This document shows positions 11,620 through 64,000 of a DNA stretch of 64,000 nt, in pieces. The notes under the pieces are model-generated. The model saw nothing but the letters and a program-made list of their open reading frames with translations, was not told the origin of the DNA and did no database searches. Every line of letters begins with the position of its first letter. Position 1 is the first letter of the stretch. Both the position numbers and the translations under genes were made by a program. The stretch is from Pocillopora damicornis (Eukaryota). Location of the stretch: contig NW_020844418.1 of the NCBI RefSeq assembly GCF_003704095.1, positions 1-64,000 of the forward strand, written 5' to 3'.

Positions 11620-11942
11620 AAGAGCAATTTTTGATCGAGTGTCGAAAGTTATTAGGGATTGCTTTTTTTTCGCTTCGTGATTGGTCAAGAAAACTCATGC
11701 CACTCTCTCAAACAATCAGATGCAAAACTCGATCGACTGTGTTTTCTTGCGTCAAAGGAAATTTGGTAGGTTTTACTTCTCATTCTCATTGGCTCTTAAA
11801 GGTTCTTATCTTTCTTCTGATTGGCTCCTGAAGGAACTTATCTTTCTTCTGATTGGCTCTTAAAGGTACTTTTCTTCCTTTTGATTAACTGTTGTGATTA
11901 ACTTGGCTCTGTTTTCACGACACTCAATCGAAAAGCGCTCTA
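11620..11942. mobile_element. MITE-like element with terminal inverted repeats, abutting the POMGNT1-A stop codon
   Basis: Ends agagcaatttttgatcgagtgtcg and cgacactcaatcgaaaagcgctcta; internal ~32-bp tandem repeats at 11788-11890. Related fragments at ~6775-7035, ~58660-58890 and ~63820-63940. Confidence 0.6.
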
Positions 11943-14900
11943 TGAATCATATTCATCTTCTGGTGGCTCCACTCTCTCAGGAATATAAATAGGCTTTAAA
12001 TCCTTCGGTTTGTGCGAGCAGTAAATTGATGCTGGGCATCCCACGACTATCACGTGGTTTTTCTTGACCCAAAACCTCCATAAGCCATGATGATATCCTC
12101 TCGCGTCTAAATCCCACATTTTCAGACAAGTAGCGATGTTTTTCCAGGTCTTGTGATCGAAAGTTTCATCCATTCTTATGTAAAACACGTACAATTCGCC
12201 TTTAGTGTCAGGAACAAAGTTTCTGAATCTTGTGCACGGCGTCTCCGTGTGGTCCAAAACCTTAGCTTTGCTAAAAAAGGACAAACAAAAAAACAAGCAA
12301 TGGAGTGATGATCATTTTTGTCGATTCATATTTTAAGTGAAAGGAGATATTATGATTTTGTGAAAGAACTCGTCTCCTATAGCTTTTTCCCATGGTCGAT
12401 AATAGAACCTAACATCGCCTGTTGGTTCAGCGTGTGATTAGCTCTATTTTTTTGGTTCCCAGGGTTTCCTCCGACTAATCCGCTCTTCTCCTCATAGAAA
12501 CCGTCAAAAGTTAACAAGCTAAACGCGATGTTGGCATTGTTACGAGCACATTACTCAAACAGTTCACCAAGTTTGTTGCCCCTCCAATCCTCTTGAAAAC
12601 CATCAGTCTCGTAACCAGACCTTCCACGGCCAAGCAGTTTTGAGTTCCTGCATTCAGTTACAGCTAAACGGTGGGATCTGGGTACGAGATTAGTAGACCA
12701 TGCGATTGCCCCTAAATACTCCTACCCCCTCCAGGCGATAAATAATAACAGAAAAAAAAGTTGTGTCTACCCTAAACCAACAAATTATTTAAAGACAGAG
12801 CAAGGAGGATCGTTACTTTTAGGCGTAAAAGGTTTCAAAGAATGGAACCAAACAAAACAGAGACATTAGACAGTAACCTCGTTTCCAGGACTTTTCCCGA
12901 TTTACGTGGGGAAAGCATTGGAACCGAGGCTGATTAAACAAATGCTCAACAGAGGCAGATGAGACAGCTCACCTCAGAAGTTGGTTGATCTCCTTCTCGT
13001 AGTTTTCTTTGTACATTTTATCAACATCCAGCTTTACATTTGGTTTTGTATTCAGCGAGTGTTTTGCAAAATACCGAGCCTGCATATGACCACCCACGTT
13101 CAGCCCCTTGCCGCCGAAATGATATGTTCGTGAAATGTCAGGGATGATACATTCTCGACCTTTCCTGTTGTGGTTAGCCCGCATCCATATGTCCCAGTCC
13201 ACAAAGTCCTCAGGCTTTGGCCATTTCTCCTCCAGTTCGTTTTTAAAAAGCTTACGACTCAACACCCTGGAACCAGGAATCCAAATGTAATATTGAGTGG
13301 CATGTACCCTGCAGATTCTGCTCATTAAAATCCCCTCCTTTATAGCCAACGTATCACTGCCTCTCCCCCTTGAACCTTACTTTAAGCAAAAGTGTACGGT
13401 CCAAGATTGTTGACCCAGCGGGTGCGGAACCTCCCTCTAAGGCAAATCCTGCGAAACTATTCTCCGCCTCAGCATAATTGGAAATTTTTCTTCATCTGAT
13501 ACCAATCAATTATAATCTGATATCAAAGCGATTTATCATACTAGAAGTCTGTCGAAAAAAGGTTTTGAAAGATAGTGAACAACTGCTGGAGATAGTGAGA
13601 AGGCCATTTTATATATATTTTTTTCCCTCTCGAACCACTCACCATCCCAGGCCCGGCATAGTGTCCACTCTGTACGTCATGGCGGGGTCATTACAGAGAT
13701 GATCATATCCCTAAAACAAAACATTACACTGATCACCCAGTCATTATACCCTCTTNNNNNNNNNNNNNNNNNNNNNNNNNNNNNNNNNNNNNNNNNNNNN
13801 NNNNNNNNNNNNNNNNNNNNNNNNNNNNNNNNNNNNNNNNNNNNNNNNNNNNNNNNNNNNNNNNNNNNNNNNNNNNNNNNNNNNNNNNNNNNNNNNNNNN
13901 NNNNNNNNNNNNNNNNNNNNNNNNNNNNNNNNNNNNNNNNNNNNNNNNNNNNNNNNNNNNNNNNNNNNNNNNNNNNNNNNNNNNNNNNNNNNNNNNNNNN
14001 NNNNNNNNCCCCCCTCCGGCGGTAGATAATCTCCATTTCCTAATTATTGTTGAACATTCAACTTGTACCACAAAGTCGCACTAAAATCGTTCTATATAAC
14101 AAATGGCAGAATTAAACCTTTCTTCTCACAATGCTAGCGCCAGAATGATATAAGATATATGGTCTCCTAGCTTCTAGAGCCTAACATAATTAACCTTGGA
14201 CAGAAATTACTTTGATCGATCTATTCACCTACGTTGAGTCTAAGAAATTGCTGATAAAAATACGTTATTTTTCTCGTTAACTTTTTTAAGATGTATTTTA
14301 AACTCGTAGCTGATTCCGTTTTAGCGGCGATATCGTTGAAGGCTGATAAAAAATGGTTCATATCCTGTGATAACTGGGCTTTTCTTTTAGCTCGATGTCA
14401 CTCANNNNNNNNNNNNNNNNNNNNNNNNNNNNNNNNNNNNNNNNNNNNNNNNNNNNNNNNNNNNNNNNNNNNNNNNNNNNNNNNNNNNNNNNNNNNNNNN
14501 NNNNNNNNNNNNNNNNNNNNNNNNNNNNNNNNNNNNNNNNNNNNNNNNNNNNNNNNNNNNNNNNNNNNNNNNNNNNNNNNNNNNNNNNNNNNNNNNNNNN
14601 NNNNNNNNNNNNNNNNNNNNNNNNNNNNNNNNNNNNNNNNNNNNNNNNNNNNNNNNNNCCCCCCCCCCCCTTGTGTGTTTTTTGCTTTCTTACCTGATCG
14701 TTCCAAGCTGATATACAATAAACACTTTCATCGTTCTCATAGACGGGGAGAAGCTGTTTAAAGTAGCTCAGAATGTCCACAGACACGTCGAGATCTTCCT
14801 CCAGTATCAATAAGAAGCTAGCATCAGGATGCTTGTCGAAGGAGTCAACGATGGATTTCTTGTAATGCTAAAAAAGACACTTTTTTAAAACTAAAAAATG

Positions 14901-63300: not shown

Positions 63301-63800
63301 CGCAATCCCCATGGAGGGGGGGGAGGGACATAAAAATTATAACTGCCAATGAGAGGGGATCGTTAGAATATTACAAAGCCTTATGGGTAGGATCAAGTTA
63401 ATTTCATTGTAACACAACCAAAATCCTCCAACCACCCCTTCCCCCCCTTCCCCCGATGGTGATTAATGACCAGTCCCTCAGCATCACGTTTCCGCCTCGA
63501 AAGAAGTTTTTTCTTTTGTTTTCTTTCATAGGCGAGAATCCAGAACCGTTAGCTTTTGAGCCGCCCCTACCACCGGATGGCAGCCGAATCAACCTTCCAC
63601 TGCTGATCATGGCTAGTAACCGCCCTTATTACCTGTACAGAATGCTTAAGACGTTACGACAGGTCCAAGGGTTGAATCATACCATGGTGACAGTGTTTAT
63701 TGATGGATTTTTCGAGGAACCTGCTTTACTTGCTGGTTTGTATGGGCTGAATGTCGATCAACAAGCGGGAGTCAGTGAACGAAGAGCAAGGATCTCGCAG
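60333..63800 (+). CDS. POMGNT1-like: POMGNT1-like paralog D, first five exons (gene continues past the window end)
   Basis: Exons 60333 (alternative ATGs 60252, 60345)-60618, 61296-61360, 62169-62342, 62738-63053, 63532-63800. TM helix, stem domain, WRDMWAF, FCDKFDGY, ASNRPYYLYRM, TVFIDGF. Confidence 0.9.
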
Positions 63801-64000
63801 GTACAAAGCATAGCTTTATGATTGGTTTAAAAGAGCTTTTGCCGCCTTCTCAACCAATCAGATGCAAAGGTGAAGTCAATCCCGATGTGGTCACGTGCAT
63901 TTTCCCGCGCTTGGCTTTATGGAATTTGATCACTGTAGGTTTGGTAATAGAATTCTTGATTAATTGAAGATGGTGCCCTTCTCTGAGCGACTTTGCTCCT

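Follow-up and report, generated by a model that had tools for sequence, protein, structure and literature searches.

An old array of POMGNT1-type glycosyltransferase genes in the coral Pocillopora damicornis and its probably coincidental GPP34-family neighbour

Introduction

Human POMGNT1, the structure of which has been solved (5GGF), combines a type II membrane anchor, an ILEI-type stem and a GT13 catalytic domain with an acidic metal-binding motif. A review treats POMGNT1 as one conserved enzyme in every animal lineage surveyed, Cnidaria included, leaves extra copies unmentioned, and reports the enzymes that initiate O-mannosylation for Cnidaria (PMC8478517). The enzyme MGAT1 (GnT-I) shares the Pfam family GNT-I but lacks the ILEI stem. 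Here we describe four POMGNT1-type genes, together with a gene of the GPP34 family that lies between two of them, in a 64-kb stretch of DNA of the coral Pocillopora damicornis. This stretch, referred to below as the window, makes up the first 64 kb of the 475-kb contig C1053, in an assembly of 234 Mb in 4393 contigs.

Known members of the GPP34 family include GOLPH3, GOLPH3L and Vps74 (3KN1, 9QPQ and 2ZIH). According to Pereira 2014, as cited in a review (PMC8478517), GOLPH3 controls the localisation of POMGNT1 in mammals. Its pocket for phosphatidylinositol 4-phosphate (PI4P) is formed by W81, R90, R171 and R174, a hydrophobic hairpin at residues 190-201 (tip FLLF) inserts into the membrane together with W161, and the acidic residues E159, D247 and D273 touch the tails of client proteins (PMC13408441). 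An N-terminal arginine motif binds coatomer (Tu 2012, as cited in PMC13408441).

An initial annotation of the window, made from its letters alone, had proposed that the four enzymes and the GPP34-family gene form a lineage-specific O-mannose module with a sorting factor of its own. The analysis presented here upholds the gene observations behind that proposal and leads to a plainer reading of the locus as a whole, namely an ordinary expansion of a gene family next to a GPP34-like gene that is probably there by coincidence.

Results

Four POMGNT1-type genes share one exon structure

The stop-free frames of the window (G+C content 38.7%, 11 runs of N) were compared all against all and searched with Pfam, the whole genome was scanned in six frames, and spliced models were built by script. 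The self-comparison of stop-free frames revealed four collinear paralogous exon sets, A on the minus strand and B, C and D on the plus strand. The genome scan placed the GNT-I exons of these four copies on C1053 and those of a fifth copy, E, on contig C3082. The spliced models in the window are as follows.

POMGNT1 paralog A: 11940..18379, minus strand; 638 amino acids; cytosolic tail MVVKRSTRR
Exons of A, minus strand: 18166-18379, 17635-17705, 16888-17067, 15842-16157, 15203-15471, 14694-14867, 13643-13710, 12973-13266, 11940-12270
POMGNT1 paralog B: 32769..39935, plus strand; 652 amino acids; tail of about 40 amino acids
Exons of B, plus strand: 32769-33048, 33524-33597, 35024-35203, 36007-36313, 36496-36764, 37393-37566, 38000-38067, 39017-39310, 39623-39935
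POMGNT1 paralog C: 51886..59289, plus strand; 627 amino acids; tail MAFKVLR
Exons of C, plus strand: 51886-52066, 54070-54134, 54531-54710 (GC donor), 55514-55829, 56202-56470, 57099-57272, 57795-57862, 58249-58542, 58953-59289
POMGNT1 paralog D: 60252..64000 in the window, plus strand; 678 amino acids from the first ATG; long basic tail; the gene ends 3.7 kb past the window
Exons of D in the window, plus strand: 60252-60618, 61296-61360, 62169-62342, 62738-63053, 63532-63800
Last four exons of D, plus strand, in contig positions (L001): 64087-64260, 65407-65474, 66308-66601, 67366-67675

Each of the models A to D has nine coding exons, and the eight introns between them agree in both position and phase (1,0,0,1,0,0,2,2); none of the four contains an internal stop. 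Exons are numbered below from 0, so that exon 5 is 14694-14867 in A and 57099-57272 in C. The lengths of exons 4 to 7 are exactly equal across all five copies, and the splice sites of the models are all GT-AG save one GC-AG in C. The third intron of C opens with GC at 54711-54712 (exon end AAG followed by GCAAGT), a position at which the four other copies have GT, and would be of the GC-AG kind if the splicing model of C is right. D has a second ATG 27 codons after the first. In E the reading frame stays open to the end of exon 7; the final exon was not found on C3082, where a 100-N gap comes next. When spliced transcript evidence for A to D was sought among database proteins, all close matches were single-exon open reading frames (ORFs).

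Domains, motifs and membrane anchors place the copies with POMGNT1

The Pfam domain ILEI (PF15711) is found on exons 2 and 3 of C with 40.6 and 33.3 bits (cut-off 27). These exons have paralogous counterparts in A, B, D and E, and ILEI is also found on orthologs in other coral data (L012-L015). GNT-I (PF03071) is found on exons 5 and 7 of every copy at 40-63 bits each (43.3 and 56.3 bits in C; cut-off 25.4). These per-exon scores are far below those of the GnT-I-like genes of the same genome, which lie on contigs C3511 and C592 and reach 322-484 bits on the family model.

The first exon of each of A to E runs from an ATG through a short tail into a hydrophobic stretch, as is expected of a type II membrane protein. 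The membrane stretch comprises 19 residues with a mean hydropathy of 2.4-2.5 in C, D and E, and equivalent stretches are present in A and B. The cytosolic tail has 9 residues in A, 7 in C and about 40 in B; that of D has 33 or 60, according to which start codon is used. In all tails basic residues adjoin the membrane span. The motifs EEDLD, AWNDQG, PGLGW and [15 protein letters not shown] are retained in all five models; we take these, including the EEDLD-type acidic metal-binding motif, to be catalytic-site motifs by reference to the structures of GnT-I and POMGNT1.

In all four copies of the window, exon 4 matched one solved structure only, that of human POMGNT1 (5GGF), in an ungapped alignment over 88 residues that scored 124.7 bits for B, 93.7 for C, 77 for D and 71.5 for A; none of the four exons matched a GnT-I structure at an expectation value (E) of 0.001 or less. 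Exon 4 of B is about 70% identical to human POMGNT1, as counted from the printed alignment. Because exon 4 of B scores highest against the human enzyme, B appears to be the conservative ortholog of the bilaterian gene, with the other four copies as divergent paralogs. A genome search returned two POMT-like loci, and the O-mannose pathway of this coral therefore has its initiating enzymes.

Compared with POMGNT1 as described, the coral set thus shares the anchor, the stem, the catalytic domain with its acidic motif and a whole-exon alignment free of gaps. It differs in having five copies, if mammals have a single one, among which B is by far the least divergent, and in its tails, which range from 7 to about 60 residues.

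The paralogs are old and recur in other stony corals

Pairwise amino-acid identity among the copies is 49-58%. The proportion of synonymous differences amounts to 0.75-0.84, which is saturated, and that of non-synonymous differences to 0.26-0.34. The stem-domain exons are the least conserved (37-44% identity). Divergence computed exon by exon agrees with the whole-gene values, with a single notably low value, that of exon 5 between A and C. There, 14694-14867 of A and 57099-57272 of C encode peptides that are 88% identical, and the synonymous difference is 0.51, against 0.67-0.98 in the other pairs. The similarity of these two exons is compatible with an old partial gene conversion between the inverted copies.

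Other coral data, Porites among them, contain exon-7 sequences that are orthologous to types A, B, C and E, with identities of 75-96%; those of type C reach 78-96%, and one of them comes from the named species Porites evermanni. Many of the more distant exon-7 matches are closest to B. A gene of type C followed in tandem by a D-like gene was found in two other coral assemblies (L014, L015), and an ortholog of A with all nine exons lies at L012 in another stony-coral assembly, ERZ25067556. To judge from these comparisons, the enzyme array is old and its types recur across stony corals. The initial label of lineage-specific therefore applies to stony corals as a whole or to a larger group, and to nothing narrower, since the paralog types recur in other coral data. 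No description of a coral-wide POMGNT1 expansion was found in the literature searched.

Upstream of the A ortholog in ERZ25067556, a TLD-domain gene (L013 1683-1859 and 3664-3972) resembles, at 53% and 34% identity, exons beside E (C3082, about 285.0-286.4 kb). A and E are the closest pair, and the resemblance hints that they may derive from a segmental duplication that took in a neighbour.

A spliced and expressed GPP34-family gene lies between A and B

The GPP34-like gene was assembled from the following parts, the exons of which are called first and second in the usual manner.

GPP34-like exon 1: 23739..24179, plus strand; coding sequence 23856-24179, 108 amino acids; from RNA contigs and protein-atlas placement
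GPP34-like exon 2: 25688..25928, plus strand; 80 codons plus 1 nucleotide, followed by a donor and then an assembly gap
GPP34-like transcript, last part: 26119..26938, plus strand; beyond the 25978-26077 gap; from RNA contigs of runs X1 and X8

The public RNA runs that contain the stretch are labelled coral or marine metagenome. Contigs from four runs were compared with the window, and most of those with the splice junction are poly(A)-selected. The RNA contigs begin at 23739-23817, and the intron 24180-25687 (GT..AG) is spliced out in three studies. The GPP34-like gene is thus spliced and expressed.

Exons 1 and 2 taken alone had no match in Pfam or among solved structures, and a six-frame GPP34 scan of the genome found one locus only, a canonical GOLPH3 on contig C2045, and did not detect the gene in the window. 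The joined exons gave a weak collinear tblastn match to the canonical GOLPH3 locus (29% over 77 residues, E 0.15), and a protein atlas placed exon 1 with GPP34 clusters (score 0.90, 187/256 features). At E of 1e-3 or less, exon 1 has 69 relatives, many of which are full-length proteins of 245-300 residues; 20 of the 21 full-length relatives pass the Pfam domain GPP34 (PF05719), the best at 5e-20. The profile built from the relatives matches GOLPH3 at 1.4e-12 and Vps74 at 3e-8. The named relatives, all uncharacterised, come from Exaiptasia (two), Nematostella, Actinia and two green algae, and exon 1 is 53% identical to an Exaiptasia relative. The alignment with the family, whose members have 250-275 residues, takes in both exons entirely and reaches to about residue 190 of the family, which suggests that only about 70 residues of the coral protein are missing from the part read here.

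The predicted model of an Exaiptasia relative is of high confidence (predicted local distance difference test 90.9, predicted template-modelling (TM) score 0.90). In a Foldseek search with this model, GOLPH3 and Vps74 were the sole matches at E of 0.001 or less, with TM-scores of 0.51-0.64, and the comparison with GOLPH3, GOLPH3L and Vps74 gave 0.60-0.64. By sequence and by predicted fold, the gene between A and B is accordingly classed as a GPP34 family member, and it differs from the three known proteins in belonging to a separate branch of 250-275-residue proteins from anthozoans and green algae.

Copies of this gene are duplicated elsewhere. An inverted extra copy of exon 2 lies in ERZ25067556 (L009 7491-7718, minus strand), 2.3 kb upstream of the complete gene and with no matching exon 1, and would be a partial inverted duplicate or a pseudogene. 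GPP34-like duplicates, tandem or inverted, were also observed in Exaiptasia (L006 7581-8313 and 10058-11582) and Actinia (L008 10025-12289 and 17758-19276), where the GPP34-like branch itself appears to have expanded, as judged for sea anemones from these genomic copies.

Two observations concern the transcribed region around the gene. RNA contigs pile up over 26900-27300 in all four runs, with a summed word depth of 62-466 against 0-60 around it and loose ends on both sides; this looks like a repeated or separately transcribed element in, or just past, the 3' end of the GPP34-like transcript. RNA contigs from all four runs also cover 23300-23499. A search with Rfam at gathering thresholds found no family in 18776-32700.

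The GPP34-like protein lacks three hallmarks of a GOLPH3 adaptor

The profile of the relatives was aligned to full-length GOLPH3 (9QPQ), with W81 falling outside the aligned stretch, and the residues of known function were compared. The PI4P pocket is not kept: R90 and R174 face hydrophobic consensus positions and are replaced by T and S in the window protein, and R171 lies in a GOLPH3 insertion with no counterpart in the family profile. The family profile likewise has nothing that corresponds to the loop with E159 and W161, and D273 is not kept either. The membrane-inserting hairpin is two residues shorter, with KMMG at its tip in the window protein. In the first 40 residues no arginine cluster is seen; this part is rich in alanine and glycine and contains single arginines.

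Judged by this alignment, the GPP34-like protein fails three hallmarks of the GOLPH3 adaptor, namely the PI4P pocket, the hairpin with W161 and the N-terminal arginine motif. It represents a separate, uncharacterised branch with neither lipid pocket nor coatomer motif.

Assembly gaps leave the gene array intact

Six of the N gaps lie in or near the genes described here. Two of them, 13756-14008 and 14405-14658, fall within the intron of A between exons 5 and 6, one (16210-16327) within that between exons 2 and 3, and one (38102-38192) within the intron of B between exons 6 and 7. The exons of A and B that flank these gaps are consecutive, ordered, in phase and of the length seen in the paralogs; no exon is therefore missing at the gaps, and the scaffolding is sound.

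The remaining two are 100-N gaps that enclose the sequence contig carrying the GPP34-like gene (18776-25977), and both are present as the initial annotation had cautioned. The left one, 18676-18775, lies about 300 nucleotides upstream of the ATG of A, and is spanned by a Tara metagenome scaffold (L011) that is 98% identical to and collinear with 15574-25977 and replaces the gap with 727 bases of its own sequence. The right one, 25978-26077, lies inside the GPP34-like gene. RNA contigs of runs X1 and X8, from two studies, lead from exon 2 through 0.9-1.0 kb that matches nothing in the window and rejoin it at 26119. These contigs bridge the gap, and therefore exons, the last coding part included, are hidden there, and both the linkage to the B side and the assembled orientation hold. 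It is thus confirmed that the gaps leave the four-gene observation intact.

The linkage of A, the GPP34-like gene and B is not conserved

In Exaiptasia, Nematostella and Actinia, no POMGNT1 exon was found within 10 kb on either side of the GPP34-like relatives, which have tandem GPP34-like copies there; the same holds for a more distant relative on a 659-kb contig (L010), again within 10 kb. The stony-coral assembly ERZ25067556, the exons of which are about 77-86% identical to those of the window in nucleotide sequence, carries the GPP34-like gene (L009) on a 39-kb contig beside an SH3/zinc-finger gene, as in the window. The A ortholog lies on a separate contig of 425 kb, in its interior, and is adjoined by a UDP-glycosyltransferase gene, again as in the window. 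The 10 kb upstream of the first exon of this ortholog (L013) contain neither the GPP34-like gene nor a counterpart of the small ORF that accompanies it in the window. Elsewhere the gene order of the window was seen only in the 98%-identical metagenome scaffold. Microsynteny across cnidarians, which the initial annotation had named as a check on its proposal, hence speaks against it. As far as these genomes tell, the order A, GPP34-like gene, B would be an arrangement of this coral lineage and no conserved linkage.

Other genes in the window

The array is interspersed with unrelated genes, namely the SH3/zinc-finger gene, a SOCS gene and a retroelement fragment. These and the further features of the window are as follows.

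SH3 and JAZ-type C2H2 zinc finger gene: 28004..30873 (exons 28004-28232, 28919-29147, 29837-30004, 30682-30873), plus strand; from Pfam and spliced RNA contigs
Small ORF of 100 amino acids, candidate gene: 19426..19725, minus strand; N-terminal hydrophobic stretch, then a coiled-coil-like stretch
SOCS-type gene, single-exon ORF between B and C: 43780-44355, minus strand; SH2 35.7 bits, SOCS box sub-threshold
Non-LTR (long terminal repeat) retroelement ORF fragment between B and C: 48774-49271, plus strand; endonuclease domain Exo_endo_phos_2, 27.8 bits
UDP-glucuronosyl/glucosyltransferase, inverted duplicate exons: 7040-7513 (plus strand) and 9289-9594 (minus strand); UDPGT 110.6 bits, 84% protein identity

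The SH3/zinc-finger gene is unrelated to the enzymes and stands outside any module; it is a conserved neighbour of the GPP34-like gene. The small ORF is single-copy in the genome, matches Pfam below threshold only and has no convincing relative in the protein atlas. It was considered as an alternative first exon of A and dropped, having no in-phase donor like those of the first exons of the paralogs. The UDPGT family of the duplicate exons is the one that adjoins the A ortholog in the other coral (L012 14849-15065). An aldo-keto reductase exon is also present in the window.

Discussion

The descriptive part of the initial annotation has held up well. Four POMGNT1-type genes with common intron positions and phases emerge alike from spliced models, Pfam and the genome scan; their great age and open exons agree with the synonymous divergence and the lack of internal stops, and their cytosolic tails differ as widely as described. 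The divergent GPP34-family gene between A and B is borne out by its relatives, by profile and by fold, and the small ORF with membrane and coiled-coil stretches is where it had been placed. Taken as a whole, the locus is probably an ordinary gene-family expansion with a GPP34-like neighbour whose presence there is probably coincidental. Several points weigh against this reading. In the lineage of the window the GPP34-like gene is truly linked to A as well as to B, and the aspartate aligned with GOLPH3 D247 is conserved, the sole tail-contact residue that is kept. The two ERZ25067556 contigs differ in coverage (58x vs 104x) and could come from different haplotypes or organisms. In animals, moreover, gene neighbourhood is weak evidence either way, and a loss of synteny elsewhere is compatible with a joint function here.

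The rival that the initial annotation had favoured is that the four enzymes and the GPP34-like protein make up one functional unit, a coral-specific O-mannose system in which the adaptor sorts the paralogs by their tails. The mammalian precedent of GOLPH3 and POMGNT1, as cited in the review (PMC8478517), lends this idea some appeal, as do the position and expression of the GPP34-like gene, the GOLPH3 fold with its retained aspartate and the strongly differing tails on which such an adaptor could act. The protein, however, does not conserve the PI4P-pocket arginines, the E159/W161 loop, D273 or the N-terminal arginine motif; green algae and sea anemones have members of its subfamily, with no POMGNT1 gene next to them; another coral assembly lacks the neighbourhood; a canonical GOLPH3 is available on C2045; and an unrelated gene sits between the GPP34-like gene and B. 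We consider a functional unit of this kind quite improbable. A variant, in which the GPP34 branch is a PI4P-independent adaptor that pocilloporid corals have co-opted for sorting at least one of the POMGNT1 paralogs through its unusual tail, with the order A, GPP34-like gene, B being kept by shared regulation, strikes us as highly improbable. The link between enzymes and adaptor would have been the striking part of the locus, and it is the part that finds no support.

More of a challenge to the reading of the array itself is a change of function in A, C, D and E, which might use another acceptor or another donor sugar or serve in a lectin-like role of the stem, so that the array would not be an O-mannose system. 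Their scores of 71-94 bits against human POMGNT1, compared with 125 for B, their identity of only about 50% to B and the weak conservation of the stem-domain exons are in keeping with such a change, but all GT13 catalytic motifs are kept, the exon sizes of the catalytic domain are identical, and the sole solved protein that was matched is POMGNT1. We therefore regard this alternative as unlikely. An artefact of assembly, be it mis-scaffolding or uncollapsed haplotypes, might be suspected from the eleven N gaps in the window, two of which flank the GPP34-like contig. Against this, identity among the copies is only about 50% and their synonymous sites are saturated, orthologs of each type exist in other data, the left gap is crossed by an independent metagenome scaffold, and transcripts cross the right one in the expected orientation. 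An artefact therefore has next to no probability.

If the locus is an expanded enzyme family with an incidental neighbour, as we prefer to read it, each enzyme would reside in the Golgi as a type II membrane protein, in which a short cytosolic tail and a single membrane span are followed by a carbohydrate-binding stem of the FAM3/ILEI type and by the GT13 catalytic domain. B, on the evidence of its sequence, most likely adds beta-1,2-linked N-acetylglucosamine to O-mannose. The catalytic motifs are retained in A, C, D and E, which would have been under purifying selection since before the sampled stony-coral lineages split; these four most likely catalyse the same reaction on different acceptors or in different cells. 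The Golgi retention of the five enzymes may be explained more simply by the canonical GOLPH3, reading the basic residues beside the membrane span, which we propose because all five tails have such residues and look like those of ordinary clients.

The GPP34-like branch, which is conserved and wholly uncharacterised and lacks the lipid pocket, is of interest independently of the cluster. The five old and intact enzyme copies that are common to stony corals suggest a diversification of O-mannose-type glycans in this lineage. Such a diversification may bear on the glycans of coral mucus, matrix and cell surface, and the copies would offer five natural variants for studies of enzyme specificity.

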